Assembly (NCBI RefSeq): GCF_037042905.1
Contig: NC_087247.1
Span: 12,648,001 to 12,712,000, forward strand
Origin: Lytechinus pictus
Taxonomy: Eukaryota
DNA length: 64,000 nucleotides
Reading direction: 5' to 3'
Shown: in pieces, positions 3,140-57,905 of the stretch
How the letters are laid out: every line of letters starts with the position of its first letter
How positions within the stretch are numbered: position 1 is the stretch's first letter
Program-made: the position numbers and the translations under genes
Notes under the pieces: generated by a model
Database searches by the model: none
Told to the model about the DNA's origin: nothing
What the model saw: only the letters and a program-made list of their open reading frames with translations

Positions 3140-4895
3140 CTAGACGGTCGAATAGAGACTAGCGCGTCTAAAATCAGTATACTGGAGTCCGTTTATGTTG
3201 TTCGACAACGTATCGCTACCAAGTGCCTCACAGACATCGCGTGCCCCAGCAAGGCCATTCTTCCGCCAAGTTAAGTTGACGCTGACGGCTCGGCTACGGG
3301 ACAGAGACAGGCCACACCCTGCTGAAGATCTTGAAGAGAGCTGTTGGTTGGGTTGGTCAAGCATCACACTGGCGTGTTGGAAGCGACCTGACGAGAGAAG
3401 GCAAAGAAGAAGAGTGACATGAATTATTTCACAAACACCAAAATCCCACTTTTTCATTGGTGGTCATGATTTGTATTTCTTATCTTACTACACACCTTCC
3501 TACAAGAAAAGACTAATCCATTGCATATCATGAACAGAGTCAGGTTTCTTTGTTTCGGCGTCTGTCTGATTTCTGTTATCTTTTTATCCGACACCTTCCC
3601 TACTTCCTAAAAGAAAAGACAAAACCATTGCACATCATGAACAGAGTCAGGTTTCTTTGTTTCGGCGTCTTTCTGATTTCTGTTATCTTTTCATCCGTCT
3701 TTGACTTCTTGGTAGGCCTTTTTTCGGGTCTGTCCAGTTGTTGGCAAAAAAGACGTAATTGGCCTGACACTTTCCTAAATCTTTGATACCATGTATCGAG
3801 TCTCGGTTGGTTTATACTTACCTAGCTCTATTGCGAAATATGAAGGGTAATACCCTATGTACAATCAGTGGTGTGAATAAAATGTTTTAGAATAAGGCCC
3901 TATTTTCATACATAATATAAATAAAATCTATTCCTCTTTCTTTCGAACCAACCTATGATACCATCGACAGAAGATGTTAGGCCGGTATTATCAAGAACGT
4001 TGAATGTAAAGGCATCGGGCCGATGTCTGTCCGTGTTGGAATCCAGTCGTTTGCTCATTATCTCAAACCTAGCACCGTTCGCCAGCGACACTACCACGTG
4101 AAGTCCATTGACCTCCAGCGAGTGAGCTCCAAAGGTATACGCAGAGGTGATTCCCCAACGCAAAGGACGACTGGAGTCGACGGCTATACCACCAGAGTTG
4201 AACTTGAGGCGATGTCTGGATGGCTGGGGCGAGTTGAGGACAATGGCGATTTCGCCGATGTAAGTGCGATCTCTGTCTCCGAATCGACCAGAGACAGTGT
4301 CCCCGACGATTCGCCCATTCACAAAGATACCTGAAACAACAGATGAATGTATATCACAAAAATAGCAAAGTTCATTCAGATTTAGAATAGAATAATGGAC
4401 AATTGTACTCCATATGTCACTGCTAGATTCAAATTCAAAACCTTGATACACCTGATAATGTTTTCCCTTTTCCCCTCACAGTTTCTTTTTAAATCTAAAT
4501 CACTATCTTACCCGAGGACAGGGGGTCGGGTGGGACGGTCGAGGCAGAGTGCCCGGCCCCTCTGACATAATTTTACTAAACTTTTGTCGATGCTTGTCAG
4601 AAATTTGTTGCCCATCCAGACGAGTTTTTCCAGGTACGGCACTGATCCAGTAAAAGGAAAGAAGAAAAAACCTATCCAGACCTTTGTGACCTTGATGAAC
4701 ATGTACATGCGAGCAGCATGACATATAAACACTATTTCTTAAACAATATTTGATGCATTTATTATATTTATTTTAATGATATTTTCACGTCTTTACCTTG
4801 CAATGGATCTTCTAATAGAGCAATGACGTCATTGTCTTGAGGATCCTCGTCTAAGCACACGGTGATCTCAACCTTTGGTACAGCTATGGTGAATC
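3140..4895 (-). other. ITIH C-terminal-type domain (last three exons of gene 1)
   Basis: GFTIAVPKVEITVCLDEDPQDNDVIALLEDPLQGIFVNGRIVG...RTYIGEIAI...LTSSVDGIIGRF...SVNLTWRK...C aligns by eye with the ITIH C-terminal pattern FII.hP....hCF......hL.Lh.DP..Gh.VNG.hh...TYF...S..hHGhhGQF. Confidence 0.75.
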
Positions 4896-7800
4896 CTAAA
4901 TCAACAAAAAAAAAACGAAAATAAAATCATAAAGACCAATGCAATAGCCGTCACAATTGGTTTCTCTACATTGTCAATTATATTGTAGAATATTTATAAT
5001 TACCTTTTCCTTGATATAGAGTTTCCAAACCGTTCAATCTTTTGGGATCCTATTGTGAGCATGGTTTGTTTAAAACAATCATATATTTGTTTTAAAAAAT
5101 GTAAAAAAGGAAAAAAAAACTACTATATTCTATAAAATGATTGGAAGAGTATGACTGGATGCAAATTACAGTTTGGAGGCCGAATGGTAAGGGCAAATCA
5201 ACTCACGTCTACATTAATATCTCATAACTCTTGCAACGTGAGAACGAACATGTAAACTAACGTCATTTAGAAGAGATGAATAAAATAAATAAAGGTAATT
5301 CTAGATCAGCAAAGACTGATGTTTATCCAATACTGTAGCTCATTCATGCATCCTGGCATTGATCGTAATGGAGAGACATAGGGTAAGAGTAGGAAGTGAG
5401 GGTTGGGCGATAACTTCTCCTCCACTAAGAACCCCTTTGTCCTCCCCAGTTTCCTCAGTTTGAATTACGATTGACAATTTTCTTGTCCCCCCTTGCACCC
5501 CAACATTTTCCACTTGCCCCCTAAATTACTCCTTTCTTCTAAAATCCTTGAGCCGCCCAAAAAGGAGACGTTGTATTACCTGCAGAAAGAGGTTCTGGTG
5601 CAGGGATAGGAGCAGGTGGGATGACGGTGTAGTTCCTGGAGAGTGTCTTTCGAGCGGTACGGGGCAATGGTGAGGTGATGACTCTCATGCCAAATGGATT
5701 CACCCGACGTGATCCCTGGTCATCTCGACTGATCAACAACGCAGTAGAAGGGTTGAAGAATCTGATTGAGTTGATAGATTACTTTTAAATAAATAATACA
5801 CGACTTGGGATCATGCATCCACAAGTGGAAAGCAAAAATGGTGATTTGATATACATGAAATGACCTCGTTACTCGCATGACTTCTTCAATTAAACGTAAG
5901 AATCAACTCTGTTGACAGTCAAGAACTGCAACCCACTGTGTGATGGATTTGCATAACAGTAGCTCAGTCTCAATTTATAATTAACTTGATAAAAATCACA
6001 ATAGCAGAATAAGCAACAAAGTAAAACACACCGAGGTATTTGTCAAAGAATACTATCCTTGTGTAAATGGATTCTTGGAAATATCCCAAGATAAAAAAAA
6101 AGTTTTATGGTTAACCTTTAATCAAAGACTATTTTCCAGCAAAACAGCTAGATTCGGAATTCACACCTGTACTGGACGGACTTGTCTTTGATTTCACTAT
6201 CCCCGATCATGCTGTAATCTGGTGATTCTTCTGCAAGAGCTTGTTCATTCTTCAAGGATTGGATGATGTGATAAGCCCAGATCCTCTCTATGATATCCTC
6301 CGGCACATCTTCACCAATCAGAGCACGAGAGGGAACCTGGAAAGAGAAGAGCAATAGATTAGTAACAAGAGAAAAGGCCAAGTTACTAGATCCATAGAAC
6401 TGATGGGGAGCGTTTCATCAACATTTCCGTCCGACAAGTTGTCAGATCTGATATCTTTCCTTGAATCTGATTGGCTGAGAAGCACCAGTACTATGGTAAC
6501 TGTCGGATGAAACAGTACTTGTCGGATAAAACGTCTGACGATTCCTTTCATGAAACGCTGTCCTGAATACCGATATTTAAATGACCCACGTTTGGAATTC
6601 AGTAGATCCACCAGTGAGTGCTAATAACCGGGCGGTCGTTTCATGAATTCGCCAGTGCTTGTCATAAATAAAGTGGCACGGAGTCATCAGGTTTTTCAGT
6701 TTGGGTTACATTGTTGGTGTACGTATCACTGATGAGCATTTACATTTTCATTTGCCCCCCCAAAAAAAAAAAAAAAAAAAAAAAACAGTACTATATGACA
6801 AAATTTATAACAATAATAATCATGATATATGAAGAAAACTTAATTTCCTTTACCTGGATATTACCATGTCCTCTAAGAGTAACCGGATCGTTAGTGGTCC
6901 TTCCGTAAACATACGAGTTGAGTGTATCATACGGCGAATTGGGCAGGAGTTTACCCACCACCGTCAACTCGGATCCGTTGAAGTAGTTTGAGAAGGTACG
7001 ATCGCTGAGTGAGTTTGGTTCGATTCCTCGAGAGTAGCGGAATTCTATGTCACGGAGCAGAGGGGTAGCCACCTCGTAGTAGAAGTTCTCGAGGTGTTCT
7101 CCGGCGTCGGCGCGTTCGGGAATCCGGCGTGCGATACCATGGTTCTAGGTAAAATGGTATGGATTATGAGTCGAAATCATCTAACATTTTGTTTTAAGGC
7201 ATCAATGAATACTGAAGTTGTAACTTGGAGAATTTCATTTTTAAAAACTGATCTGTAAAACACGAACAGCTGATATGACCATGCATGTGTAGCACGTGCG
7301 GCGTTTTATGATTTTGTTTTATCCCTCTAAGGGGGGAGGGGCTTGGTAGACAAGACAACGCTCACCAATATCCATAGGCTGCTATACGAAATTCAAAGCC
7401 TTAGACACACGTCTCTCTGCCCCCCCCCCCCACCACCCCACCCTGGATCGCCGCCCATGATGTGTAGTGAAAGGAAGCAACATTGTTCAGTATTCAGCTC
7501 TTGAATACCTTTGCATGCAAGAGAAAGCTCTGACATTTTAGGTTCTGCAGAGGTAGTTCCGTTCTTCATCTCACCTGCAAAGACAGTCTTCTCAAGAAAG
7601 GGTAGTCAGCATCAGCACCGAAGCCGATACAAAAGAGCGAGAAATCACCATTGATCGCCTCGTGGACGTTACGTTCGATGATTGTTTTGTCAATCTCGCC
7701 ATGGTTCGGGTTGCCATCGGTGAGGACGATGAGCATGGAGACGATTTCCTCGTCTTGTGGATCTTGCTCGCTCTCGGTACGTAGCATCTCAACTCCGGAT

Positions 7801-10800
7801 ATGATGGCCTTGTGGAGGTTGGTGTCTAAGAGGTCGGAACAAAAGCGGTGACGAAATTACACACTGCCTCAGATCTCAGTTATACCTCATGCTGACTGAT
7901 GAAAACGAATACACAAGTTACATAATCTGTACCACGAAATGGTAAAAATCGAATATACCATTGATTGAACTATTGATTAAAGGTGAGATCTTTGTCTTTG
8001 GTCTACGATTGACATTATTTTTACTGCGAATTTTCTGCTACAAGACATTGATTCTCCTTATCAATCTTCTTCGACACCTCTACCAATGCTGATATCATGG
8101 ATATGGAATCAAATCATCATCATTCAATGACCATCTTGTTATGATCATCAGGAATCAATTTTTCTCAGTGTGACCCGTTCTTGTAACTTTCGACAGATGA
8201 TCAAAGGCTCAACTCTGATCTTAATGCAATATAGCTAAAAACTCTACTGTGCAAGATAAACGTTTTGATAGCAATTCATCAAACATTAGTACAATGTCTG
8301 AGAAGAAAATACATCGGTTCACAACCATAAATGTCAATTACAAATTGCAAAAACAAATTGATCCCATCGTCCTTTAAGGAATAACCATAAAACAAACGCA
8401 GAGCTCTTCTCCTTATAGATGGTAATTCGCTTGTTTTAAAGAGATTAAAAAAAAAGACTTACTAGCCATTTCCTACTTACTGTCCATTTCCTGAAGACCC
8501 ATGACGAATCTCTTCGCCCTGCGTACATTCTCCTTGGTGGAATAGAGCATCCCAGAACGCTCCAGGAAATGAACATCATCGGAGAAGGGCAGGATATTGA
8601 ACTTGTCCGTCTCCGACATATCATCCAAGATGGTGGACAAGGCATCCTTGACCTGAGACAGTTTGGTGCCCGACATCGAGCCGCTGATGTCGATGACGAA
8701 GATGATGTTCTTGCGGAGAACCGAAAGACCTGATGGCGAGAAGTACTGGACGAAGTAGTCGTTGAGGACCTGTGGTGTTTGGAAACAGTGGCAGATAGGA
8801 AACGCATCGCATGGGACCGTGGAGCAATGACAAAGAGACATACTGATGTTCTCGAAAATATTACTAGTGACAACTAGATAATTACAACCTTCGTTGACGG
8901 ATGATCACATACATCAAGTTCATAAAACGAAATGGAATGAAAGATTAAAGCGTATAAATGCCGTCGAATTTCATCGAATACGACAACAATTTCAGATTCT
9001 TTATCAATGAAGCCAAGAAAATAAGGTAAAATATGAATAACGCTTCCATTTGTCATTAAGTATCACTGTAGTTACTACTACTCCGGCGACCTTGCTAGTA
9101 TTCACCTGTATATCACCGGCATCATTGCCGTGGGTGACGTCGTACTGCACGGTATAGTCAGCCATGATCCCCATAGGGGACACACCCATCTGTTCTCGCG
9201 CCCTGGGTGAGTAATGAACCTCCCATCGATTGCTGTTACGTTTCTGGACACTACGGGCCAGTGAGATTGGATTGGATGCATCGGACTGGTCGAGGAGGTA
9301 ACTGTCCAGGCGAGATAGGCCTTGAGGTTCGATGATGATGGTGTCCAGGTTCATCACTTCAACTACCTTTGATTAAGAGCATTAAAGACGTGGTAGTTAC
9401 AGGATGGAATCTCATTTGTTTTCATTATTTTTTTCAATTACTTGATGATTTTGCTTTTCATATTAAATGGCCAACGGTAAATAAAGAGATGTGTGAAAGC
9501 ACAAAATACAAATCTTTTACGGAACACATAATACGTAGTACGTCTCCTTTCATACTGTGGTGAAAGCATGAGGAGACCTTGTCATCCCCCATCATATTTG
9601 ATAATAATGCTTTGAAAGTTGCTTTGATGATTTTCATCATAAAGAAAACGGTTTAACTGAGGAATACCGCTGGCTAGCAAATCGTAATATTGTTTATCTC
9701 AATTAGATTTTTGTCACATTGTTCATGATATTAAAAAAAAAACATGTTCTTCATCTTTAAGCAAGGTAAATGCAATGACTGACATTCTTATCTGTACCTG
9801 TTCTGGGAAGATCCCGATCTTCTGCTCGTACAATCCAAGGCGTCTTGGTAACTTTCGTTCGTAGGTCAGCCGGAAGTACGCCCTCTCACCTGGTTCAACT
9901 GGAACAGCTATCACCAGAAGATTGTTCTCAAGATCACCCCTGAAGAGAGACGGACAGAAAGAAAGATAAAGGTTGAGGGGAAATATGAAGAACATGCAAG
10001 AAGTTATGAGGTAAGGAATGTGATAGAGAAAGAAGGAGAGTACTGTTATCGATGTGCGTGTGGGTGTGTGCGTATAAGAATGCTATGTGTAGGTGTAGGT
10101 ATGTGTGTTCCAAATTTAAAACATTGTCGCCAAACCATATCCTGAAAATATTGTTTAATGATAAACTTTCGTCTTTGCTTCGTTGCCTTCGGCTTTTATT
10201 TTGAATAAACAGAAATGCCAACAGAACACCAGTATAATACTGGAAGAGGTGATTAAAGATACTTACAATGGTGAGAGAATTCCTCCACTTCTTCCTATCT
10301 CTAGTTTTCCCAGCCCCAGTCCGGCAGTATCTTGTGGGTCGGTCACTTCACTGGTATACACCTCTCCGTTAACCGTTCTAGTTAGAAAAAAAAAACATGA
10401 ATTTAATTTACGTTATAGTTTAAACGAATTTTAAACGTCATTTGCATAGTTTATAAATAAGAAATGTTAATAAATATGTATTTCTTTTATCTGTGTTTAT
10501 GACTTTTTGTAACATTGAAAGGTCATGCATTATCCTATTAAAACAGTGATATCTTTTAAGAATGTCTTAACAGACATTAAATTTAGATTGAAGGCTAATT
10601 ATCCTCTCCTAACACACGATGTTTTACTCTACAAAAATACATATTAAAAAAAATATCGAATCACCAACTATATGATCACGAAATCCTGAATGGGTGATCA
10701 TAATGTAAAGCATTATGGTGCTATTGCTAACGATAAAAGACATAATCAGTGTTATTGTTTTGGCTTGTCTAAGCAATCATTTCAAATCATTGCAATTACC

Positions 10801-13800
10801 ACACGATGACATTATCAATGAATTCCAAATCAGTGTTTGAACTATTAGCAAGCGTCATGAGTTTACATTGTGAGATTAGAGATGAAGGCATCTTCTGGAA
10901 GTTTTTGTTTGAAGACCGCATGCCCTGGAACCCTTCCTTCATTCTGCATTTCGACCTCGACAGTCGTTATTGCATAACGTAGGATGATCAAAGACATTAC
11001 GTTGAAAAGAACAATATTGATATTTTCCTGGAAAGGGGAAGAAAATAATAGAAATAACTTATTTGAATTGTTCGTCTATGTGTCAGACTTCCGATGTATG
11101 TTTTATTTTATCAACAATTTGTTTGGAAAAGGGGATGAATAGAAAAAGAAAGAGTAAAATAGATTAGTCGAGTACCAATTACGAGCTATTTGTAAGATTA
11201 GGTTTTTACTTACATCGTTTTCCATTGCTAGCGGGGCATCTTGCAATTTTACAGGAGCTGTGGTCGGTCCATTCTTGCCTTGAAAAAAAAATTTAAAGGT
11301 GTATCAATTAAAAGATTATAAAGTTGTCACTCGTCAGTAATAACTTCTAAGACTAGAAAGTTGCTCATAAAACGACATGATTTGCGATAGTAGTACTTGA
11401 GAATTTCGAGATTTAAAAATGTCTTAAGTCGTTGACTTGCATTTTTCTTTCAGCGGATAACTTATATTCCTCTTAGACGATAATATCATGGATGAAGTTT
11501 TTGGAGAATACATATTTCCTCCAAAATGATAGAATAATTAGCAGTCGAAAACGACATGATGGTACTAAAAATGCTTTTATCTAGGGTTATTGGAATTTTT
11601 CAATTTGAATTCGTCACTTGTATGTCGTGTATGTTACAGGCCTAGATTATTAAAGCGAAACAACCCTGATCTCACCTATTGCTTCTTTCAACAGATCTCT
11701 GGCACTGTTGGCCAAACTGTAACCCGGAAGTGGAACATCGTCGCTATTGCTTCCGTCGATCACGTCTCCCGTTCTTGGGTGTCTCAGAGCCAATGGAGTA
11801 AGCGGGGTTACCAAGTTATATCGCTTGGCAAGGACGATGATACGCTCTGCAATGTCGTCACGTTCGATGGGATCCCTGCTCCTTGCGTACATGTCGATCA
11901 GATCCTCAAGCCGTTTCATCACCCAGATGCGTTCAACCACGTTTGGTACCGTCCGATGGTAAGACAGTTCCGGAGAAGTTCTCTGTATATTCAAGAAAGT
12001 TTCGTTTCAAAAGGGTAGTCACATCAATAATCATATGATTGTTTTCCAGTGAAAATGTTTTTACTATTATTAAAGCACATTTTGTAAAATGCGGAGATAT
12101 TGTATTACCGTGATTACGCTGGGGTACTTGAATTCTTATCAAATAAAATTTAAGATGCAATAATTCACAAGTCTGCACTAGCCATTCATCTTCTTATCTC
12201 ATTTATGGGGGAAGCTTTAATAAAAAAATGTTGTTTTCTTAAATCATATAAATTCCATTATGACATAAGGTTTACAGCCTTAGCTCGGCACACAAGAGAT
12301 GAGACTGATTTTGCCCTGACGTAACGTCATCACAAATTGCGCGAACCACCATAAACCACCCACAGATGATAACAAACTTACCCTGATATCTGAATTGACT
12401 CTGGTCTGGTCGGGTCCGTCAGTAGATATTGAATCTATCACCCCTCTAAGATAGTTTGATGGTGGATTGTCGTCGAGTCTCCCGGCTATCACAAGCTCCG
12501 ATCCATCGAAGTAGACAGGAAAGCGCCTCTCTGTCAGGGTGTCAGGGTTGACCACTCCGCCTGGATACCTAGCGTGTGATTCAGAGGGGATCAAGGAATG
12601 AGAGGTGTCAACACCATTGGCGTAATCATACAAATGCATATTGTTCATTCGTTATATGGGGGTGGTAGCGACAACTATGCTAAATTACCGTTTGCATTTT
12701 GGGGAATGAGCTAAGGTGTTTAACGTTAACGCGGAGGTACGGCGACCGATGTCACAACGGTATTTTTGCTCTCCTAAAAAGTCGATTAAATGACCGAACA
12801 TTTTAAAGGATATCTTTGAAGACATTCAATAACGAAGTGGATGTTACTATACATGGGGGTAAAAATTACCTCAGAATCTACAAATTTCGGAAGGGTTTGT
12901 TTGTTTGTATGGTTATGACTTGCTGCGCTTTACTTCACTTGTGTTCTTGATTAGGGTGACTGTCGAACTTTATGGAGAAAATTCAGCTCGTTAGTTTAAA
13001 TAGCTTAAAACGATCATCCTTTAAGCACTCTATCAAACGATCATCCTTTTAACACTCTATCAAATAAGACACAAATCGTTGCTAAAATTATATCAATGAA
13101 TAACTCTTACTCCATGGACACATCGAACAAGAGCGGTCGATACAGCTCTAGATAGAAATCACGAAGCTGTTCTGTGGCACTGGAGTCTTCGTAGATCATC
13201 CTGGCAATTCCATTGTTCTCGTAAGCCAGCTTGACAAGAAGATCGAAATCTGCCAGTCGACCGAACCCAAGCGTGTAGAGGGAATGCTCCCCAGCGATAG
13301 CCTCCCGGGCGTTGTCGAGGATCTCTTGAGGATCTGTGACGCCCACCGAAGGGATGCCGTCGGTCAGAAGAATGATCATACTGAGATATTCGTCACCCGG
13401 TCTGTTGTACACAGTCTCGCTGTCTAGGAGCTCATCCGCTCTCAGAATAGCCTCGTTGAGGTTCGTTTCTAGGAGAATAGAGTGATTATCAATTGATTTT
13501 ATAGTATGTACACATGTACATGAACAAATTTCTTGCTTCAGTATTAAGACCAAGGCAATGTATGCGCAAAATTAGAACCGTCGGAAATTGAAATGACGTA
13601 CCAAAGAAGCACATTGATCGTGTTATTGCAAGTTTATAACCAAGATTTGGGGAACGATAAAACGAAACCATCAAGATAATGAAAGAAGATTAACAAGGAA
13701 AGTTAGCAACTGGACAATCCAGAGTGGAATTGAAGAACGTAGAGAGAAGGGGTTTTCAGGAGCATCTCTCTAGCATCACCAGATGTCAAATTCTACGAGC

Positions 13801-19800: not shown

Positions 19801-22800
19801 TTCTCAATCACATACCACGTAATTGTCCGGGAGCAGACGAGTCTTCATAAATCCTCCTAGCCATACCACGGTTCTGAAGGGCTAGTCGCACCAAGAAATT
19901 ATAGTTCACCAGCTTGCCGAACCCAAGGGTCACTATAGAACACCGCTGGTCATTGGCGTTACGGACGTTACGTTCGATAGCGGAGAGACTCGTCACACCA
20001 ACGGATGGTTTCCCGTCCGTTAGCACGAATAGGATGCATACCATTGGGTTGGAAATGGTCGAGTTCATGGAGCCAGTGGTTTCAAGGAGACTGAGACCCT
20101 CTAACAGGGCATCGTTCAGGTTGGTCCCTATGGAAGGCAACACAATAGAATGTAGCAGCCACAATCTTTACTCAAAGGCTTCACTAGATCGCCTGTCTTT
20201 ACGATATTTTAATCAAGGTTGAACTACCGATGCAATAATACACATTCTGACATTGGTGACATAATGACCAATAGCAATTCCGTCAAAAGTTTATGTACAT
20301 TTTTTTGAAATATCAGTAATAATATGTATACTCCTTCACATGATGTTCCGCCAAGTTTCTATTGAAGCAAACAGGAAATCCAAAAGCGTACTGCAGATTG
20401 GTCTTACATTGTTTACAAACACCATTTCATCAGTCAGTTACAAAGGCTACTTGTGAATAGGCCTCGTATGTATATATGCGTTTCAAAATGTGCAAGATAC
20501 CACCGCCCTTCCCCCCTCTAAGTTCCTATCTTTATGTCATAATCAACAAACGTAGAGAGCGTCAGCATTTCAAAAGTAGTGACGCCCTTTACGGTCGTTG
20601 TACATATTATTGACTTACCTCTTTGAATGTCTAGTTCGCGAATGAAGTGCTTGGCATGGTTGATGTTGTATGGGTTCACATCAACCATTCGTCCGCGGTT
20701 CCAATCATCGTACACGTAATCGGAAAAGGGCAAGATATTGAAATGATCGCGATCGTTCATCTCGTCGAGAATGGTATACATCGCCTCTTTGGTCTGTTTG
20801 ATCTTATTCCCGTACATGGAAGCACTGAAATCTAGGACGAACACCACTCTTTTGTTCACAGCTCCAAAGTTGGCAGGTGCGAAACGATGGATGAAGTTGG
20901 TTCCCGAGGTCTAATATTACACGTTAAGAGAATAATAAAGACTCTTGATCACTACAGGCTTTTACGAATCATCCATTTTTACTATATTTGGATTTAATGT
21001 TTCTAAGTAGGATTAGGCCCACATTGTCAAGATAATTGGCCAGAACTATAGGTATTAGTATTAATCAATATCAATAATTATGTCTATCGAATCGAATGAG
21101 ATAATCGATGCAGATCTCAACCCAATACTGTATACAATCGTTTGGTACAATAAAGAAAGGTATCCTATCATGTGATGCTTGCTCTGCCGAAAATTGTTCC
21201 TTCGTAACTAATATATCAGACATGTAAGCTGGAACTTAAATAAAGGAGTGAATAAACAAAGATTACTAAATCAATTATGACCACTCCAATCTCAAACAAA
21301 TCCTAACTTAGACGCAAGATACCAGATCAAAATTGTTAAATAACAACATAAGGAAGAGAATTGAGAATTGTCAGATGCTGGCTGGTATGCCTTGACTGCT
21401 CAGAAAATATGAATATTAAAGAGAAAACGAAAGAACCGACGGCTTTGCGTCCTGTCACTCTGAAAGGACACATCTCCTCACCTGCACCTCCCCCACACCT
21501 GGAGGATGAGCGATGTCATACCGGATGATGAAATCTCCGTAGATACCAGGAATATTGTAACGGTTCATGTAGCCATCCTGCTGCTGTTGGGTTGGGCGGT
21601 AGTCGATCTGACATTGCGTCGTCCCGGTTCCCGATGTCCGTGTGTTTCTGAGATGACCACCGAGGTCGTAGACCTTACCTCTGTCATTACTGGCAGCTTC
21701 AAGAAATAATAAATCGTCATGATATCTATTATCATGATTATGGTGAAATGCGCGAACCATACAAATTATAGAAACATCCTTGTAAAGGATTAGAAATGCA
21801 GACATAAGCCGTACCTTTTGAGAAAAAAAAAACGTAGCGAAAGAGCATTTGACTTTATGAATACAAACAAATCTAAGTCTATCTCTAAGTATAATCAGAA
21901 TAAAAATTTTTGCTTTATACATATGCCCATCTTGTGTGTAATTTATATCCAGGATTTCCACCTGAAAGTTCCTGAAATAAATGAATAACTGGACAAAAAA
22001 TAGCATATTGTTCTTGATGTCCTCAAAATTAACTGTCACGGACTTGGGTCATTCTCTTTTCTCATTCTATTCAATTTACTGTAAGCGAAAAGGACAAAAT
22101 AGATTTTGTTATTTAAAGTGACGTAAATGCAATCAAATGGCGTCTTGCCTATCATATCTCTCAGCATCATGAATATACATTTCTAATCTACGTAAGATGT
22201 GAATATATCAGCAACTCATAATCAGATGATCTGGGCCCAAGTCTAGAAAGATTCATGATTGATCTCTTTGAATGCATGATTAGGCTTATAACATGCATAA
22301 TGCAAGCGCGAGACCATCATACAAGGGTTCTCTAAAATAAGATACCAAGATTGGCAAGATAATATGAAATATTTTGGGTACATCTGCCATTGATTTGATC
22401 AATGAGCTTTCTCATTTGTTGTTTAAAAACTCAGTGACATGTAGAGTACACTTCTCTTTGATTGAAAAACATAACGTCGATCGCTTTCCATCGATATAGA
22501 ATGACAAGTAGAATAATTTGATAAAACTATGGCGGGGAGTTGCTTATTCTGCCAAAGTACAGGGCGATATGGACACATCAAAAGACATCATTGATGTTTT
22601 ATTTGGGTTACCTACAGGGGGGAATTCTTATTGCATGTATTTTGTACACCATAACTGTATGTGTGGAACAACGCCATCAAGAGATATATAACACAGATAC
22701 AAGCTGAAACTTGAAACTAAAACTAAAACTAAATCTTGAAAATGAAGAGGGAAAGGTCCTTACTCGATCGGTGGAGACCTGCCATACTGTCAGTGAGCAG

Positions 22801-25800
22801 AGATGAAACAGACTCGGTGTAAGATCTAGTATCGATACCGGCCTCCGATCGTTCGATACCTTGAGGCTCAGTCACTGTGGAGTAGATGCGGAAGTCATAC
22901 ACACTCTAGATGGAAAAGGGAATATAATATGATCACAATAACGATAATAAAGGAATGTTGCCTGAAACGAATATAAACCAAAATCATGTTCAATTCAATT
23001 CATTTATTCTAACTTTTCCATTTTTCAAAAACATCAAAATATGTACAGTTGAAATACACATGTATATACAAAAAAAAATAGATTAAATACATAAGCATTG
23101 CAAATTAACATTATAAGTAAGAGAAATAAATGGAAAATGGAACACCTGTAGAAAGCTTTTTTTAAAAAGCTTGAAGTGTAGTGGAGTGGCTATATACGAA
23201 CCCTCGCCTGAGGTAGACAGTAGTTTACATTGACGTAAATCAGGAAAACTAGCACCTCATACAATAACAGATGATTATACACAGTCATTAATAGAAGAAA
23301 GGCTAGATATGGCTAGGAAAGCAAGAGGATTTTGAGATATTATCTGTTAGAGAGTTTATAGTTCATGTCATGAAATCAGTGAACATTATTTTATTTTTGA
23401 AAAAGTGTACAGAATTTGCCCTCCAACGGGATAGGGCGAAAGGCAAATCCAACTTAAGCAAAGTAGAAGTTGTCATGAAATTGTGTTGTGGTGTCTCAAT
23501 TTTCATCCAAAAAAGGCGATTTTTCATAACATGGGATTCATGCCTATAATGCGATTCGAACTCACTACTTTGCCACTGCAAGCGCAAAGACTATACCATT
23601 GCGCCAAGCTGTGTTGCACGAGTCGTTGCCAATGACTTTGTAGGTTTATGATCCTTGTCTATGAACATCAAGGACACTATGAGTAGTATATTTATTGAAA
23701 ATTCATGAAGTGTAATCTTTGACGGAATAACGCCTATTCTGACGCCGGCAAGATAATGTCGTGGGAAAAGTAATTCAACACCCGGGGATGGGGAACGTGT
23801 ACCCCTAGGAATTCTTTATGTCAAACTGCAGCCTATTTGCAGTGATGAGAGTGAGTTGTCTCGTCACCCAGGCAGTTTGAAATGGTCATGATGGCCACGA
23901 TGCACTGGCGGATGCAGGGGGGGGGGGGGACACAGCCGGCCCGTGCGCCCCCCCCCCTTGAGAGGTACAATAATTTTTTTAAAGTAAATATGCATTTGTA
24001 ACACAAGTGCCCCCCCCCCCCCCCCGTTTTGAAAACGAAGGCTTTTTTTTGCTTGTCAAATTTTATGATGGACGAAATGACCTTAAATTTTGGGTGAAAA
24101 CTCTTCTTTTTTTTGGCTTGTCAAATTTTCCTCGGGAAAATGTGCCCCCCTTTTTTAAAATCCTGGATCCGCCCCTGTCACGATGGTATAGGCTTTGAAA
24201 TTGTCCAAGTTTGGACCGTATCTTATATTTTTTAATTGTATTATCTTATCTTACCTGACTTGGTCTAACGCTGATCCTCTGTGTGTACCAACCATTTTGG
24301 CGTTCCAGTAGTTCCTGGTACTGTATCATAAGCTGGACGTTACCTCGAGGGACAGTATCCACAGTCACGGTGAACAGGTTCCTGGTTTGTTGTCCACTAT
24401 GTTAAAACAAAAGAGGTAAGCTTTTATTGTGTGAACGGAGGTTATTACATCTATAATAAAGTAATTAAAAAGTGTTTTTTACTACATGTAAAATGCCTAA
24501 GAACAATTTATTTCTTACAATATTAGTTTCCCTTTGAACGTGTCAAAGAAAAGGACGAAAACCGAAAAAGGAAGAAGAAGAAAAGAAGAAGAAGGAGGAG
24601 GAGGAAGACAGAGAGGAGGAGGGGGAGGTGGACGACAGGGAGGAGAAGCGGGAGGTGGAGGAGGGCCAGAAAAATAAAGGGGGAAAGGTAAAACAAAAAG
24701 ATGAAAACTAAAATTTGGAGGGTCATGTGCAAACTCTCCTAGAAACCATTTATTCAGGTAAACGATATCTGCAATATCTCAAGATTAATTGTTTTCAGAT
24801 ATATTACACATTATTTTAAAGATTTTCACACCTGAACATCGAACCTTAATCAAGATCCTTGAAATAAAAAAACACGTTCCTTTGAAAACCCGTATACATC
24901 TCTCGAAAAGTTATCAAATATTCTCCTTACCCAGTAGTATATTCCATCTTCTCTAGACTTGATATCGATACGTCTGCCGGTTGCGATAGATCGCTGACTA
25001 GACATCTATCGATAGCATAACCCTGGTATCGTTCCCCATCGACATTCCTGATGAGAAGAGAAGTGAAACGAAATATTAATAAATCATTATCAAAGTCTGG
25101 CATAGGCGGCGATTTCGTGAGAGTTTTGGTCCAACTAGTAGGGGGGGGGCAGACGACCCTCTGCCAAAGGCAGCTGCACAAAATTTAGAAATCGAGGGTG
25201 GGTGACGTAACCCTGTCCACCTCCCCCCCCCCCCCCGATCGCCACCAATGAAGAGGAGGGAATCACCAAGAGAATCAATCGGCAACGAAATTCAATAATT
25301 TAAGAGATTATCCCCCAAAGGTGATCCCTGGCGCCTCTTGCCAACAAAATGCAAGGGAACGTTTCATGCAAGGACGTTTCGGAGGTTTTATCCCATTTCA
25401 TATAACAGTTACCATGTGCCTCTCAGCCAATCAGAATCAAAGAAAGTTGTCAGATCTGGCAACTCGTCGGACAAAGATGTTGATGAAGCTCTCCCCTGAT
25501 TAAAGTATGATTATTTGGAAAGGTATGACAATTTAAGATGACAACTGTTAACATTATTTAATGTAATTTTGGTCTCATTAAAATCATATCTGGGGTATGA
25601 GGAATATGTCATCCTTTACGCCGCTGTATGTAACTGACAAATCATGTGACTGATATAATCCGGTATAATATTATACCGGATTATATCTGTCACACAATTT
25701 GTTAGTTACATGTATATGTAAACGATGAGGTCTAAGTCATTCATAGTTTTGTTCGTTTCCGTTAAAAAAATGTGTAATTGCTACATACACTTAGAGATTT

Positions 25801-26386
25801 GAGTCTATATATTTTGCAACCAAAACCCTGAATTTAGAGGGAAATAATATTTTAGCAGTGGCGTAGTTTAGACCAGGAACCATTTGGTCTATAAATTTGA
25901 AAATTAATAATATGTAAAAAAAAAAAAGATAATAATATAATTACATATTGAAATCGGTGATGTATGAGTTAAGTGGGAGCAGCAGATCGAATGAGACGCT
26001 TTGTCTGTCTGATGCCGGATTTCGGATGTAGGCTCGGATCGTTGTACTGGCAAACCGAACGGCTATCCGAGACTCGACATGGAATCGGACTATCTCAGGA
26101 GGGACTGGAGTCTGAATGAGGAGAGAGAATGATTAAGAGGTTTGAAAAAAGTTTGAATAATCGCAATTTCAAATGTTCAAATCTGACAGTCTATCAAAAA
26201 TTGTATGAATCGCGAGGCAGTATGCCTACGGCGACTAGCTTAGCACACTATATAAAAGGCAAGAAAAAACAAAGGCAGAAAAGATGAAAAAAATAAATGA
26301 GGACTGGAAGAAGAAAAAAAAAGAAGAAGATAATAATTATGATGTTGACGATGATAAATAAAGATACGACTACTATTACTACTACA

Positions 26387-26468
<82 letters not shown>

Positions 26469-28967
26469 AAGACATGGTGTATTACTTTTACTATCTCTTC
26501 TACTACTACTTATACTATCACTACAACTACTACTACTAATAAAGATATAATAAATGAAATAAATTAAAAAATAAAAATAAAAATAAATAAATAAAAAAAA
26601 ATGAAATAAAATAGAAGGGGAAGGAGAAGACGAAATTAGAAAGAAAGACATCCTTTTATTCATTTAGTTGATAATTCAAACGTACCACATCAGCTGCTTG
26701 TCTCTTGACTCGGTCTATCAGATCTTGCTGAAAAAATGAAAATAAAAGAAAGTTCCCATAAAGCAATGCGTAAGGACTGCCATGACTTGCAGAGATATAA
26801 ATCCCCCCCCCCAAAAAAAAAAAATACACGTGTGTCGATCTATAATTTTTCAACCAATCGGGGGAAAAGATGCAATTCGACTCTTCATGAATTGTAATGC
26901 ATCGGACGACTTCAAAGAAGTTATTATCCCCTATTCTTGAATCATATCATGTATAGAACCCACCATGCCTACGGTAACATGATTTAAATAAAACTTCTCA
27001 TAAAACGATTATGCAGATCCTGGTCATACATCCTCAGCTGAACAAATCTACTTATATCTTCATAAGAGCGAATACGTATTGTAAAATTGGATTTACATGG
27101 TTGCCATATGAGGCTATTGAAGAAAAAAAAATCTTTGGGTATGAGTTTTGCTTGGAACGCAAGTACAATAATAAAATGCAAAACAGTGCAACGAATTATT
27201 AACAAATTTACACGACAGGTCAAGCATGTCAAGCCCATTGATCATGTTGATTTTCGAAACAGGGTCTAAACTTGTAAAAAAAATAATTGATAGCTATTTC
27301 ATCAAAATCAATAAATCGGGGAGGGGGTAAATCTGACAGGGTTGGCACCTCCGCTTTCTACCCCCGAGAATATCTCAATCTCCATGACAACCCACGATCT
27401 CCGCCCGTCGCTCCGGTGACAGAGTGTCTTCGAGTCAATAGACCTTCCCACGCCCCCCTTGTCTGCTGGCTTTTTCTCACCTATATACAACCTACCTTGC
27501 TAGACCGAGGTCTCTATAGTTACCAGCTATTGGTTGGATGGTGGTAAGAATAATAATTGTTTTCAATAAAACATCCCACTCTCTGTCCTTTATTCAATGG
27601 CGGTATTTTTCCATTTTAGCGTGCACTTACAATTAAAAAAACATATCCAAAATGGCAAACTATTGTCCGTAGTATTACCTGTGAGTATAATGTATTTCAT
27701 TGAATGAAACGCGTTTCCTATAAATATGACTTTGATTTTTTTAAAGGAATCAAAAGTGACATTCAAGATATCTTATAGATGGAAAGATGATTAAATAATT
27801 ACGTTTGAATTTTGACTCAATCATTGCTTATCTTTTACTATCAAAACGTTTAAAATTGTAATTGCAATAATGAACCTATTTAGTATTATTGTAATATATT
27901 GATTTAAATAACATGATATATTTTGTTAAACTTCAATTTAATAATATATGAAAAATGGTCAACCAACATGTTTTTTCAATAAATAATTAATGTATGCTTT
28001 TGATATAATTTAACACATATTTTTCAAGGTACTTTCATTCATGCTTCACGTTTGAAAATAATCAGGGAATTATCAGCATTGACATGATTGACCACGTATT
28101 TCATTTGTATTTCCAATATTTACAGAGGCTTCTACGAAATATATATGAAGACTTGCGAATACTGATCACATTTATGGAATATTGACTTTAACATATAACA
28201 AATTAAAAACTATGTTGCATGAATTAGATTATTTTTTAATGTTAAAATATATTTTTTCAATATAATTCTGTATTTACGTAAAAGTTAAAATGGATCTGTT
28301 ATAATTTTGATATGTTGTGTACATGAATTAAAACTTATATTTTTCAAAACTGACTGATATTACAAAATGCTAGAAAACAGAAGGGGTTATGATGGGACAT
28401 ACAAAAAATAAATCTCTTAAGCTTCAAAGAGACATATCTTTTCTTTTTAGAAACCTTGAAACTTATTAAACGATGTCTGTTTTGTGATGGTGAGGATTGA
28501 AAAGAAAAAAAATGTTGCATTTATGCTTTTATAAAAATAAATCCCAATTTTGGTCTATTATTTTTTTCTGAACAAAGGTAAGCAATTGTGAAGGGTTTTC
28601 GCACTTTGTTTACATTTAATGTATCACAATCATAGGTAATCACTCTCAGAAATACATTTTCAATTTAAATTGAAAATTTCAGGCCATCAAAATCTTGCGA
28701 CCCACCTTGGAACTGAAAATCATTTTCTCTTCTGCAAATTTGTAATATTAATTTAAAGATTCGTAATATAAGGTTTTATATCTAAAAAAGTTTAACTCAA
28801 GTTTTACTCACCGCTGTAATCGGCTTCTTCCTCAGATGTTTCGCGAAGGCGATCCATTTTTCATTAGCTTTGGAGGATGATGCATCGCAGGGGTAAGAGG
28901 AAAACTGGAGAACAACAACCAAGAGCAAAATCAGGCGAAAGGCGGTGCCCCTTATCGAGAACCCCAT
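3140..28967 (-). CDS. Secreted ITIH (inter-alpha-trypsin inhibitor heavy chain)-like protein with three tandem VIT-VWA modules and one ITIH C-terminal domain; 32 coding exons, ~2418 aa
   Basis: Exons in transcript order: 28967-28812, 26727-26686, 26111-25945, 25047-24931, 24396-24255, 22905-22764, 21696-21482, 20910-20619, 20127-19816, 19217-18985, 18037-17075, 16843-16680, 16372-16259, 15707-15566, 15063-14800, 14217-13926, 13468-13111, 12568-12382, 11982-11676, 11278-11214, 11027-10867, 10377-10267, 9939-9798, 9366-9106, 8769-8481, 7825-7575, 7144-6854, 6336-6167, 5761-5580, 4895-4797, 4330-3953, 3387-3140. All introns are GT-AG with compatible phases; the total is 7257 nt ending in TAG. 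Signal peptide MGFSIRGTAFRLILLLVVVLQFSSYPCDA (alternative in-frame ATG at 28997). ITIH hallmarks recur three times: hFhhDxSxSM.G.K..Q.K.A, TNL, LTDG.P, GFG, A.RI.E, P.L, YF.GSEL, ER.(W/Y). Confidence 0.88.
3492..3698. repeat. Local tandem duplication (~100 bp x2) in the last intron of gene 1
   Basis: CCATTGCA(T/C)ATCATGAACAGAGTCAGGTTTCTTTGTTTCGGCGTCT...GATTTCTGTTATCTTTT occurs twice. Confidence 0.9.
5740..11027 (-). other. ITIH module 3 (VIT + VWA + helical hybrid region) of gene 1
   Basis: VIT: FNVMSLIILRYAITTVEVEMQN...LPEDAFISNLTI...LTYERKLPRRLGLYEQKIGIFPEQ. VWA: IIFVIDISGSMSGTKLSQVKDA, NTNLHKAII, LIVLTDGNPNHG, FCIGFG. Then FYYEVATPLL, NYFNGSELTVVGKL, IIERIWAY. Confidence 0.9.
6405..6566. 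mobile_element. Short MITE family, copy 1 (other copies ~16015-16152 and ~25355-25499 in opposite orientation)
   Basis: Termini GGGGAGCGTTTCATCAA / TTCATGAAACGCT. Shared core CCGACAAGTTGTCAGATCTGA...GATTGGCTGAGA...ATGGTAACTG. Confidence 0.72.
11780..16843 (-). other. ITIH module 2 (VIT + VWA + helical hybrid region) of gene 1
   Basis: VIT: YNVESDTTERYARTKVEAEYEN...IPSGAYVSDFYV...LTYDELLKRVRGQYEQRINIAPHQ. VWA: IVFVIDVSASMYGTKLSQTKEA, ETNLNEAIL, IILLTDGIPSVG, YTLGFG. Then YFDGSELVIAGRL, VVERIWV, RYNLVTPLT. Confidence 0.9.
16015..16152. mobile_element. Short MITE family, copy 2
   Basis: CGTTTCATGAAAG...GTCAGATCTGA...GACAAAAATGTTGATGAAACACTCCCC is the reverse complement of 6405-6566. Confidence 0.68.
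17095..17680 (-). repeat. Coding tandem repeat (PRTWP / PRTRP / TTTEA) forming a Pro/Arg/Thr/Trp-rich linker between modules 1 and 2
   Basis: Lies inside the 963-bp exon 18037-17075. It has seven TTTEAP units interleaved with 15-bp PPRTW/PPRTR units (about 11 Trp). Confidence 0.9.
23541..23610 (-). mobile_element. Degenerate tRNA-derived SINE head / tRNA pseudogene
   Basis: Minus strand has A box TGGCGCAATGGT and B box GAGTTCGAATC at tRNA spacing. The stems do not pair cleanly. Confidence 0.55.
23903..24177. mobile_element. hAT-like MITE
   Basis: Termini CACTGGCGGATGCAGG / CCTGGATCCGCCCCTG. 8-bp flanking repeats CCACGATG / TCACGATG (7/8). Homologous to 48596-48800. Confidence 0.8.
25355..25499. 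mobile_element. Short MITE family, copy 3
   Basis: GGAACGTTTCATGCAAGG...CAGCCAATCAGAATCAAAGAAAGTTGTCAGATCTG...GTTGATGAAGCTCTCCCC. Confidence 0.68.
25628..25711. repeat. Intronic palindrome (perfect 36-bp core, ~84 bp imperfect)
   Basis: GATATAATCCGGTATAAT|ATTATACCGGATTATATC at 25652-25687, flanked by ATGTAACTGACAAAT..TGTGAC / GTCACA..ATTTGTTAGTTACAT. Confidence 0.9.
26369..26538. repeat. (TAC)n microsatellite
   Basis: Near-pure TAC run 26369-26467 plus a degenerate extension. Confidence 0.95.
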
Positions 28968-30392
28968 CCTTCTTCGTTTTCCAGATCTCCACACCATGGG
29001 TTGTATTTTGTGGAAGTTCGTTCCCTGGACTTCCACTGGCCCTCACACCAACCTAGTTTTGCTTCATACCCTACAAAAATCACGGAGACTTCTGATCATC
29101 AAATTAAACTGAAGAACGAGGAGGTCTTCACTTCATTTCGACATATTTCCTTCAGATATCACTTCATGATCACAAAAGTGTTAAAGTCCATTTTTCTCCT
29201 TTTGTCATCCTGCGATTGACTTGTGAGTGGGTGATTGTTGTGGTTTGGGAGTTTGGCTGAAGTCAGAGTCGAGGACTCCGTGGATAGCAAGATTGGTGCA
29301 ATTTTTATCACCGTCCCAAGGTAAAGCACTAGAGGAAAAAAGGTTTTGAAGAAAACAAAGATAAATGGAACTAAAATATAAATGCATATATCGAAAGCAA
29401 AACATGACAAAATTAACAATTATATCACGTAACCAAGGTGACGATTCATAGAAATGAATCTGAAAACTATATTCATCTTGATAACATTACTACTTATTTT
29501 GGTCTCCGGAAATGGTCGTTGGACATTCATTAAGATTGTCTCTATGTACTGACAAACGTTTACCATAAATAAAATCTAAATGGGATGGCAATGGGGGGGG
29601 GGGGGGGCTGATAATTTTTTTAAAACAATTTAGGTGCCTTATTTAGTTAATTAGAGCAAGCTTTTTTATTTCAAGCATAAATTCGCATAATCAATTAGAA
29701 ATGAGTTCTTACGTAGAATTTGATCTAACAGTTTTGTAGATTATGCCAGCATGGGCAACGCGTGTGCCGATTTTCGTCGCGATCACGCGATCGACGACCG
29801 AGATCATAACGGGGGGGGGGGGCTTAATCAGCCCCATGGCCAGTCCTCTTAGGCGTCGAAATTACCCTGTTTTTTTTTAGGGTTAAGGCACGACACCAAC
29901 ATGACCAAGAGCATTTCATTTGTACATTTTGGGAAAAGTGTTAGTACCCCATCTATGGTTGATAATGAACATGTAAGAAAGTATGGGTGAATTATTATGA
30001 TGTCTCATTTAATTTTTGAAGCGAAATGTATCGTATAAATTATATTGCTACCGCGCCCGCACCATAACCATCATCTTTAGTATCGTTATCATCATCATCA
30101 TAAGCAGCATCGGCATCATCGTCATCCCAATAATGTTTCATATATTACCTTAGGGGATCCACGCTCAACCAGCAATGCTTTTTAGTGGATCCCCTCATTT
30201 CCATATCAGATTTTGTTAAAACTATTTTACAAATGTTTTGGAACTCGTTATTGATTTGTAATCATTGTTATCATATTTCATTTTTATTTGTTTATATTTA
30301 TAATGTATATTTGATTTGTATTTGCTTATAATGTTGATAATGGAAATGGAAAATAAACTTGAACTTGAACTTAAACTTTTATCATTTATCAA

Positions 30393-57680: not shown

Positions 57681-57905
57681 NNNNNNNNNNNNNNNNNNNN
57701 NNNNNNNNNNNNNNNNNNNNNNNNNNNNNNNNNNNNNNNNNNNNNNNNNNNNNNNNNNNNNNNNNNNNNNNNNNNNNNNNNNNNNNNNNNNNNNNNNNNN
57801 NNNNNNNNNNNNNNNNNNNNNNNNNNNNNNNNNNNNNNNNNNNNNNNNNNNNNNNNNNNNNNNNNNNNNNNNNNNNNNNNNNNNNNNNNNNNNNNNNNNN
57901 NNNNN
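57681..57905. other. Assembly gap (N run)
   Basis: 225 N characters. Confidence 1.

Follow-up and report, generated by a model that had tools for sequence, protein, structure and literature searches.

In Lytechinus pictus, LOC129255898 is a single protein-coding gene for a triple heavy-chain protein, in which three VIT-vWA-hybrid modules of the inter-alpha-inhibitor heavy-chain (ITIH) type follow one another in one open frame. Within the window (the whole stretch of 64,000 nucleotides of contig NC_087247.1 that was analysed, whose numbering is used here) the gene occupies 28997-3140 of the minus strand and comprises 33 exons, all GT-AG (Table 1). A starting splice model of 32 GT-AG exons (2407 aa, stop-free) was refined to these 33, and the resulting 2436-aa translation matches exactly the RefSeq 'uncharacterized protein LOC129255898' (P0155) of L. 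pictus. A preliminary description of this DNA had proposed such a frame of about 2418 aa; the three modules and the in-phase linker exons between them are present where it had placed them, with no stop in the spliced frame, but the length had to be corrected. The gap is explained by a 24-nt exon (18393-18370), by exon 5761-5580, which is longer than first drawn, and by an optional upstream ATG at 28997; counting from that ATG, as RefSeq does, the start codon at 28967 chosen in the preliminary description encodes residue 11.

Table 1. Exons of LOC129255898 in window coordinates, with their content and supporting evidence
Feature	Position	Strand	Content	Evidence
Exon 1	28812..28997	-	ATG and signal peptide	exact translation to P0155
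Exon 2	26686..26727	-	pro-peptide, R-V-K-R/Q furin-type site at 26712-26698	ortholog conservation
Exon 3	25945..26111	-	module 1 VIT, first part	Pfam VIT
Exon 4	24931..25047	-	module 1 VIT	splice model/translation
Exon 5	24255..24396	-	module 1 VIT end	splice model/translation
Exon 6	22764..22905	-	module 1 hybrid region	exact translation
Exon 7	21482..21696	-	module 1 hybrid region	exact translation
Exon 8	20619..20910	-	module 1 vWA first half, MIDAS D-F-S-A-S 20832-20818	Pfam VWA
Exon 9	19816..20127	-	module 1 vWA second half, TN, LTDG 20023-20012	Pfam VWA
Exon 10	18985..19217	-	module 1 hybrid-2 region	splice model/translation
Exon 11	18370..18393	-	24-nt phase-0 micro-exon, 8 aa	translation
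Exon 12	17075..18037	-	module 1 tail, linker element, stalk	RNA: donor 17075 joined to 16843
Exon 13	16680..16843	-	module 2 VIT start	RNA joints 17075/16843, 16680/16372; Pfam VIT
Exon 14	16259..16372	-	module 2 VIT	RNA joints
Exon 15	15566..15707	-	module 2 VIT end	RNA joints
Exon 16	14800..15063	-	module 2 hybrid region	RNA joints
Exon 17	13926..14217	-	module 2 vWA first half, MIDAS D-V-S-A-S 14139-14125	RNA joints; Pfam
Exon 18	13111..13468	-	module 2 vWA second half, LTDG 13367-13356	RNA joints; Pfam
Exon 19	12382..12568	-	module 2 hybrid-2 region	RNA joints
Exon 20	11676..11982	-	module 2 tail	RNA joints 12382/11982, 11676/11278
Exon 21	11214..11278	-	65-nt linker exon, modules 2-3	RNA joint 11676/11278 (X1, X3)
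Exon 22	10867..11027	-	module 3 VIT start	X1/X3 contig loose ends match 11026-10997
Exon 23	10267..10377	-	module 3 VIT	splice model/translation
Exon 24	9798..9939	-	module 3 VIT end	exact translation
Exon 25	9106..9366	-	module 3 hybrid region	exact translation
Exon 26	8481..8769	-	module 3 vWA first half, MIDAS D-I-S-G-S 8691-8677	Pfam; alignment
Exon 27	7575..7825	-	module 3 vWA second half, LTDG 7724-7713	Pfam; alignment
Exon 28	6854..7144	-	module 3 vWA end and hybrid-2 region	splice model/translation
Exon 29	6167..6336	-	module 3 tail	splice model/translation
Exon 30	5580..5761	-	spacer ahead of C-terminal domain; acceptor 5761, not 5728	translation
Exon 31	4797..4895	-	ITI_HC_C start; G-F-T-I at ortholog D-P-H-F position	alignment
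Exon 32	3953..4330	-	ITI_HC_C core	Pfam ITI_HC_C; own-genome match
Exon 33	3140..3387	-	C-terminal end, stop codon 3142-3140	splice model/translation

Concatenation at the gene level, as first suggested from the letters alone, is borne out by the splice model, RNA contigs and RefSeq identity, which together give one gene and one mRNA. Both inter-module joints singled out earlier for an RNA check (17075/16843 and 11676/11278/11027) are crossed by intron-free contigs from two studies. The first is carried by contigs X1 and X2, and by X3 in an allelic form whose 25 'between' letters equal 17075-17099 with 2 mismatches; 11676/11278 is carried by X1 and X3, whose loose end at 11213/11214 continues with the exact start of exon 22. 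A 4905-nt RNA contig runs from module 2 across the module 2-3 joint to about 3.2 kb past the end of module 2 and reaches far enough to span module 3. One raw L. pictus RNA-seq run gave no reads on those exons of the gene that lie in the stretch compared with it; its reads fell only on an intronic repeat.

A Pfam scan of the spliced protein returned the expected three VIT, three vWA and one ITI_HC_C domains, and the same set was obtained for the Diadema, Apostichopus and Antedon proteins. Each unit combines a VIT domain, a vWA with an intact metal-binding MIDAS site and hybrid regions, and covers almost all of the crystallised HC1 chain of vertebrate inter-alpha-inhibitor (residues 29-606 of its 660); a single ITI_HC_C pro-domain ends the protein. 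That there is only one signal peptide and one C-terminal domain was confirmed by hydrophobicity and Pfam: the hydrophobic core lies at about residues 20-30, and in the four other orthologs tested a KD >2 is attained by N-terminal segments alone. Between modules, sequence identity is 33-37%, and all three are equally conserved relative to Diadema (76-77% identity each). Since the DxSxS, TN and [TS]DG motifs are invariant across all three modules of nine orthologs, trivalency is structurally plausible.

Linker sequences show little conservation between orthologs. Exon 12 encodes an element (17767-17690) with an invariant Cys that is conserved across orthologs, followed by a stalk (17689-17087) of about 200 aa, rich in Pro, Thr, Arg and Trp and derived from 63-nt tandem repeats; such a stalk occurs in the L. 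pictus lineage alone, the linker between modules 1 and 2 being about 46 aa in Diadema and about 30 aa in the other classes. Exon 11 is missing from the Diadema protein and so is possibly a cassette exon. Crinoids, the holothurian and one of the asteroid paralog lines retain the Asp-Pro motif DPHF; it has been lost from the echinoids (L. pictus, Diadema) and the other asteroid line, so that the defining covalent heavy-chain chemistry is not possible for this L. pictus protein.

At least nine collinear proteins of 2005-2253 aa were found in at least eight further species of four echinoderm classes, among them one echinoid, one holothurian, two crinoids and three asteroids, one of which has two paralogs; the homolog searches were word-filtered, and this range of the architecture is that among the matches listed. 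In the module tree there is full support for separate clades of module 1, module 2 and module 3, each of which tracks echinoderm phylogeny, and all 27 triple-gene modules form one supported clade (100/99), outside which fall the hemichordate, amphioxus, vertebrate, brachiopod and crinoid single-module ITIHs. The internal triplication is thereby dated to the echinoderm stem lineage, before the divergence of the living classes, and crinoids, holothurians, asteroids and echinoids have all kept the order and the three MIDAS sites. Besides LOC129255898, the L. pictus genome has another triple paralog and an ordinary single-module ITIH with D-S-D-P-H-F (C3:35.585-35.611 Mb). The supposition that the architecture was undescribed holds for the literature, in which our searches found no paper on a multi-VIT/vWA heavy chain, but not for the databases: RefSeq already predicts it for L. 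pictus and for eight further species of echinoderm, always as 'uncharacterized'.

As to function, we consider it plausible, with the balance about even, that the protein is a secreted, multivalent, divalent-cation-dependent binder of the extracellular matrix or coelomic fluid. A glycoprotein of about 260 kDa would work there through its integrin-beta-like vWA/hybrid units, each MIDAS engaging acidic ligands or, on the model of human HC1 self-association, other heavy-chain units. By analogy with vertebrate HC1 only, three sites per chain could provide avidity and the cross-linking of extracellular matrix first suggested in the preliminary description, with no need of a chondroitin-sulfate scaffold. 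Where a lineage still has DPHF, cleavage at the motif would remove the pro-domain, and an ester bond from the one C-terminal Asp could tie the complete triple chain to a glycosaminoglycan; echinoids have lost it, so the protein is expected there to be uncleaved and to act non-covalently. The L. pictus stalk may keep unit 1 apart from units 2-3 as an extended spacer, probably one that is O-glycosylated.

A serious rival, which we nevertheless hold to be rather unlikely, is that the protein serves the coelomic fluid as a multi-bait protease trap, like ITIH4, or as a complement regulator. Its exposed linkers, above all the Arg-rich, Pro-rich stalk, would be cleaved by proteases, and the adjacent vWA would hold these in a non-covalent, MIDAS-dependent complex, giving three traps per molecule. 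ITIH4 offers the precedent, as it inhibits MASP-1/2 and kallikrein in a MIDAS-dependent manner once cleaved in its protease-susceptible region (PMC7793589), and a 'Putative ITIH3' occurs in a holothurian coelomic-fluid proteome (PMC12119288). The stalk, with 43 Arg in 215 residues, has the look of an ITIH4-type bait, the L. pictus protein shares with ITIH4 a proline-rich region and the lack of a C-terminal bikunin/chondroitin sulfate attachment consensus, Kazal-type inhibitor exons adjoin the gene, and C3 is bound by HC1 via its MIDAS. However, the crinoid and holothurian orthologs and one asteroid line keep DPHF, unlike ITIH4, and a lineage-specific stalk provides no explanation for three units kept throughout the phylum.

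Cleavage of the linkers after secretion, which would turn the product into a polyprotein precursor of three heavy chains of about 70-80 kDa acting singly, as in vertebrates, seems improbable to us. Poor linker conservation and the near-complete HC1 chain in each module speak for it; yet neither module 1 nor module 2 has its own Asp-Pro site, the linker between them bears the conserved Cys element and not a cleavage motif, and the ortholog comparison revealed no conserved dibasic or furin-type site at either linker, the sole conserved R-x-[KR]-R being the N-terminal RVKR/Q (8/9 orthologs). Three adjacent single-module genes joined by read-through or a gene-prediction artefact, for which fused tandem ITIH models in low-quality annotation (frog P0002, clam P0055, beetle P0121) could be cited, are scarcely credible and are contradicted by splice, RNA and ortholog evidence: neither module 2 nor module 3 has its own start codon with signal peptide, a stop or C-terminal domain is missing from modules 1 and 2, the inter-module introns measure only 231 nt (modules 1-2) and 397 and 186 nt (flanking the 65-nt exon of modules 2-3), the canonical, in-phase joints are found in RNA contigs from two studies, and the layout recurs collinearly in nine species and twice in the L. 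pictus genome.

The three fused models, with two or three VIT-vWA stretches per predicted protein, were rejected as instances of the same architecture, P0055 and P0121 because an internal unit has its own signal-peptide-like start and P0002 because unrelated sequence separates its two units; on this sequence evidence they are look-alike artefacts of ab initio, low-quality records. Integrin beta subunits (beta-I and hybrid) would share the plan of a MIDAS-bearing vWA inserted in a hybrid domain, a likeness already established for HC1 (PMC7170535) and carried over here, but the triple protein has no known transmembrane segment or alpha-subunit partner. Ambulacrarian single-module ITIH-like genes (the L. 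pictus C3 locus, Antedon P0013, Ptychodera P0019/P0044, Glandiceps P0085) have the same unit and many intron positions in common with the triple genes, but only one unit, and lie outside their clade. The best PDB sequence match is ITIH4 (9C4F/9C4N; E 7e-100 over about 575 residues), which lacks the bikunin/chondroitin sulfate attachment consensus, has a proline-rich region and acts non-covalently via its MIDAS (PMC7793589); it differs in its single unit and its C-terminal region, the echinoderm family ancestrally having ITI_HC_C with DPHF. Solved ITIH1 matches with E 1e-94 over about 575 residues, and HC1-HC3 (ITIH1-3; 6FPY) resemble the triple protein in the domain order of the unit, secretion, an N-terminal pro-peptide, the single C-terminal ITI_HC_C pro-domain and, for crinoid, holothurian and some asteroid orthologs, the D-P-H-F site, which is missing from the L. 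pictus and Diadema proteins. Hyaluronan synthase is reported to be absent from echinoderms (PMC10381214). Vertebrate heavy chains carry one unit per polypeptide and become multivalent when separate chains, their C-terminal pro-domains being removed, are attached by ester bonds to bikunin's chondroitin sulfate (PMC7170535), whereas the echinoderm protein carries three units in one polypeptide.

The gene LOC129255898 is transcribed into one mRNA that encodes three full inter-alpha-inhibitor heavy-chain (ITIH-like) units, each with an intact metal-ion site (MIDAS) in its vWA domain. The window, with a G+C content of ~37%, holds no long prokaryote-type open reading frames and is thus eukaryotic, and the ITIH-like exons lie on its minus strand as stop-free segments in three successive series, from 29.0 kb to 3.1 kb. 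A first assembly from scored splice sites comprised 32 exons, all flanked by AG...GT, in a single frame of 2407 amino acids with 0 internal stops. Comparison with the Diadema ortholog and with P0155, the RefSeq protein of this gene, led to three refinements, namely a 24-nt phase-0 exon, an acceptor at 5761 for exon 30 and an in-frame ATG further upstream, at 28997. The resulting model of 33 exons yields precisely the sequence of P0155 ('uncharacterized protein LOC129255898 [Lytechinus pictus]', 2436 aa), in agreement with the preliminary description, which had placed the three modules (M1, M2 and M3) in one spliced frame. The added micro-exon has strong splice sites and, because it is present in RefSeq and missing from the Diadema ortholog, it may be a cassette exon.

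RNA was compared over 11180-17179, a region that comprises M2 and both inter-module boundaries, using Logan contigs of the runs X1 and X2 (study P1) and X3 (study P2). In all three runs the contigs cover exons and not introns and are therefore derived from RNA, and all joints of M2 were found in them with minus-strand GT..AG ends. The joint 17075|16843, from M1 to M2, occurs in X1 and X2; in X3, position 16843 is joined to a 25-letter stretch that equals 17075-17099 with two mismatches, and thus represents the M1-M2 joint on another allele. The joint 11676|11278, from M2 to the linker exon, occurs in X1 and X3, and for 11214|11027, from the linker exon to M3, whose acceptor falls just beyond the 6-kb region compared, the contigs have a loose end at 11213 with the sequence of the first 30 bases of exon 22, reverse-complemented and without the initial G. 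Moreover, record 5 of X3 (4905 nt) runs from exon 13 or 14 to ~3.2 kb past 11676, which is enough for the whole of M3, the stop codon and ~0.5 kb of 3' UTR. The predicted junctions 17075/16843 and 11676/11278/11027 are hence present in RNA contigs of two studies, the last of them by way of the loose end. The raw RNA-seq run X10 gave 0 reads on exons of the gene within 11180-17179.

The coordinates of the gene and of the further features are listed in the table.

Features of the window (positions within the 64,000-nt stretch) and related loci on the same contig, NC_087247.1 (C3)
Feature	Position	Strand	Remarks
Triple ITIH-like gene LOC129255898	28997-3140	-	
Micro-exon	18393-18370	-	24 nt, phase 0, 8 aa
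Stalk between M1 and M2, in exon 12	17087-17689	-	~200 aa
Interspersed repeat	16017-16155; copies at 6405-6513 and 25357-25501		~110-145 bp, in three introns of the gene
Kazal-type cysteine patterns	33757-34188, 43206-43655, 44071-44406, 62342-62716, 63788-64000	+	upstream of the gene's promoter
Run of 225 N	57681-57905		assembly gap or masked stretch
Single-module ITIH-like gene	C3:35585600-35611100	+	loci L001-L003; conventional, D-S-D-P-H-F intact
Second triple-module ITIH gene	C3:36012900-36036800	+	loci L004-L007; found with M2 exon search; 23 Mb from the window

Searched against Pfam, the whole protein contains three VIT stretches (PF08487, 119.7 bits in total, cut-off 26.5; exon-level matches agree), three vWA stretches (204 bits) and one stretch of the ITI_HC_C pro-domain (PF06668, 47.2 bits, cut-off 27, residues 2228-2370), the latter on the last module only. 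This is the composition that had been expected of the spliced protein, and the proteins of Diadema, Apostichopus and Antedon have it as well. The best sequence match in the PDB is ITIH4 (E 6.9e-100), followed by ITIH1 (E 8.5e-94), with the query residues ~940-1525; some 575 residues of one module match residues 29-606 of the HC1 chain as crystallised (660 residues), so that each module spans nearly the whole of that chain. Homology to the solved ITIH1/4 structures already fixes the predicted fold of a module. M1, M2 and M3 share 33-37% identity with each other and have their first five intron positions and phases in common, which points to a duplication of exon blocks.

A hydrophobic segment lies at the N-terminus of the protein, and in each of four further orthologs no segment apart from the N-terminal one exceeds a KD of 1.4. 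In L. pictus, a further segment (KD 1.95) lies at residues 1581-1599, at the start of the VIT domain of M3, a position that is not notably hydrophobic in other orthologs. The linker between M1 and M2 contains a conserved Gly/Trp-rich element with an invariant Cys at its end. The number of conserved cysteines is seven, and since this count is odd, one of them may be free or engaged in an inter-chain bond. Tandem repeats of 63 nt, 89-96% alike, code for the stalk, which is confined to the L. pictus lineage and rich in Pro, Thr, Arg and Trp (70, 52, 43 and 11, respectively, in 215 residues counted). In this region the RNA contigs of another individual (X3) differ, for which reason the length of the stalk may vary between alleles.

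A profile built from the second vWA exon of each module was run against 1.84 billion representatives and found one 2170-aa protein with three matched stretches, P0001 of Antedon mediterranea. Length-matched searches added at least nine further proteins of 2005-2436 aa, all labelled 'uncharacterized protein'. Triple orthologs occur in the crinoid Anneissia japonica, the holothurian Apostichopus japonicus, the asteroids Patiria miniata (two paralogs, A and B), Asterias rubens and Acanthaster planci, and the echinoid Diadema antillarum, whose protein is 72% identical to P0155, the protein of the echinoid L. pictus itself. Among the matches listed from up to 8000 word-filtered candidates in these protein searches, the triple architecture was found in echinoderms. 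BLAST aligned the orthologs collinearly, module 1 to module 1 and so on. In nine orthologs every module retains the MIDAS motifs D-x-S-x-S, T-N and [TS]-D-G intact. The modules are equally conserved, sharing 76-77% identity with Diadema, 44-50% with the remaining eleutherozoan classes and 36-40% with crinoids; conservation of the C-terminal domain is lower. At the start of ITI_HC_C, the two crinoids, Apostichopus, Patiria paralog B and Asterias carry the D-P-H-F motif, which is absent from L. pictus and Diadema (which both read G-F-[TN]-I there), Patiria paralog A and Acanthaster. Judged from this distribution, the motif has been lost independently at least two times.

Several other models with multiple matches were set aside. 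P0002 (frog), P0055 (clam) and P0121 (beetle) are ab initio, low-quality, non-RefSeq records that we read as fused tandem genes: the clam and beetle models have an internal unit that retains its own signal-peptide-like start, and the frog model has unrelated sequence between its two units. P0005 (catfish), an ab initio non-RefSeq record as well, has a partial internal duplication only, and P0024 (amphioxus, 6024 aa) gave no match to the ITIH-module profile and is thus not built of ITIH-type units. The predicted chain of P0121, from the beetle Exocentrus adspersus, continues from a VIT-vWA protein into several Kunitz domains, which would join heavy-chain-like and bikunin-like parts in one polypeptide; two genes of this kind seem to be fused in the record.

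The per-module phylogeny proposed beforehand was carried out by maximum likelihood (LG+C20+F+G4 by PMSF, 603 columns) on 27 modules and ten single-module ITIHs (three hemichordate, one amphioxus, four vertebrate, one brachiopod and one crinoid), with all rows kept. M1, M2 and M3 each came out as one starred clade (100/100, 100/100 and 100/99), and all 27 modules together formed a single starred clade (100/99). Within each module clade the crinoids come first, followed by the holothurian with the echinoids, and the asteroids. As each clade follows the order of the classes, the triplication is older than crown echinoderms; it took place in the echinoderm stem and was retained across the phylum. 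On this sampling, it is later than the split from hemichordates, unless the gene was lost in the latter. The duplication behind paralogs A and B took place within the asteroids.

In the genome of L. pictus, Pfam matches to ITI_HC_C were confined to two loci, the gene under study and the single-module gene, a search that missed the C-terminal region of the second triple gene. This second gene matches the first in collinear order over M1-M3 and the C-terminal region, with an identity of roughly 40-78% in individual exons, and also lacks DPHF; tblastn found no match in it to the long Pro/Thr/Arg stalk. The genome has one Link-module locus. Upstream on the opposite strand, the Kazal-type patterns, one of which is followed by a long poly-Glu run, place the triple ITIH gene head-to-head with a Kazal-domain gene cluster; these exons were recognised by eye, and a Kazal regular expression on the neighbouring ORFs gave 0 matches. 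In every run the interspersed repeat attains a k-mer depth of ~5000 in RNA, and its flanks vary; it matched no Rfam family and probably represents a SINE- or MITE-like element present in many transcripts.

HC1 was shown to resemble integrin beta and to have a functional MIDAS (Briggs et al. 2020, PMC7170535), and the C-terminal pro-domains of HCs are removed upon attachment to chondroitin sulfate (PMC7170535). The Asp-Pro motif of ITI_HC_C was described as a conserved autocatalytic cleavage site in a sponge study (PMC11670116). We infer that the triple chain would act as a secreted multivalent, cation-dependent binder or cross-linker, of which the ancestral form could be anchored through one Asp-Pro-dependent ester and the echinoid form would be non-covalent. 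The main rival is a protease trap of the kind known for ITIH4, a chain with a proline-rich region and without the bikunin-linking consensus that traps proteases once cleaved, in a MIDAS-dependent way (Pihl et al. 2021, PMC7793589). A polyprotein cut by furin at the linkers was rejected: the sole R-x-[KR]-R site conserved among orthologs is the N-terminal RVKR|Q at residues 68-72, and the linkers have no conserved dibasic site. Three separate genes or read-through were rejected in view of the RNA joints and the phylum-wide collinearity, and because no starts, stops or signal peptides occur internally. Additional transcripts may begin or end between modules; such transcripts would have no signal peptide or no stop codon.

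The cross-linker reading can be extended into an alternative route to inter-alpha-inhibitor-type multivalency, though we consider this unlikely. In the ancestral form, which crinoids, holothurians and some asteroids would still have, three MIDAS-bearing units would be ester-linked at once to a chondroitin-sulfate-type glycan by a single Asp-Pro cleavage. The echinoderm extracellular matrix would thereby gain a trivalent, cation-switchable cross-linker, possibly at work in mutable connective tissues; echinoids and one asteroid paralog line would independently have made it non-covalent. 

Three fused units have been retained phylum-wide from before the living classes split, with all metal-ion sites intact, which shows selection on multivalency itself. 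According to a review of the echinoderm extracellular matrix, which leaves ITIH unmentioned, echinoderms have no hyaluronan synthase (PMC10381214), and the gene therefore offers a means to study the role of heavy chains where hyaluronan is lacking. The repeated loss of Asp-Pro supplies natural covalent versus non-covalent versions for comparison. L. pictus is a genetically tractable sea urchin, so that knock-outs and tagged alleles are feasible.

To our knowledge, inter-alpha-inhibitor heavy chains have been studied almost only in mammals, and in papers on echinoderms they appear only as 'putative ITIH2/3', from coelomic-fluid proteomes or mesenchymal cell clusters. A full-text literature search found no description of a multi-VIT/vWA heavy chain, nor were the LOC identifiers mentioned anywhere in it. 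The preliminary description, which knew of no account of the architecture, therefore stands as far as papers on a multi-unit heavy chain are concerned, but not for annotation, since the triple protein is already predicted by RefSeq; the gene is a domain-architecture variant of a known family. Mammalian multivalency relies on the protein-glycosaminoglycan-protein link to bikunin and on transfer to hyaluronan by TSG-6. The L. pictus polypeptide has three vWFA/VIT units, compared to the one stated for all vertebrate HCs, each of which is predicted to have a single vWFA domain (PMC7170535). Within the family, ITIH4 likewise lacks the Asp-Pro consensus for linkage to bikunin and chondroitin sulfate, as does the L. 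pictus gene.
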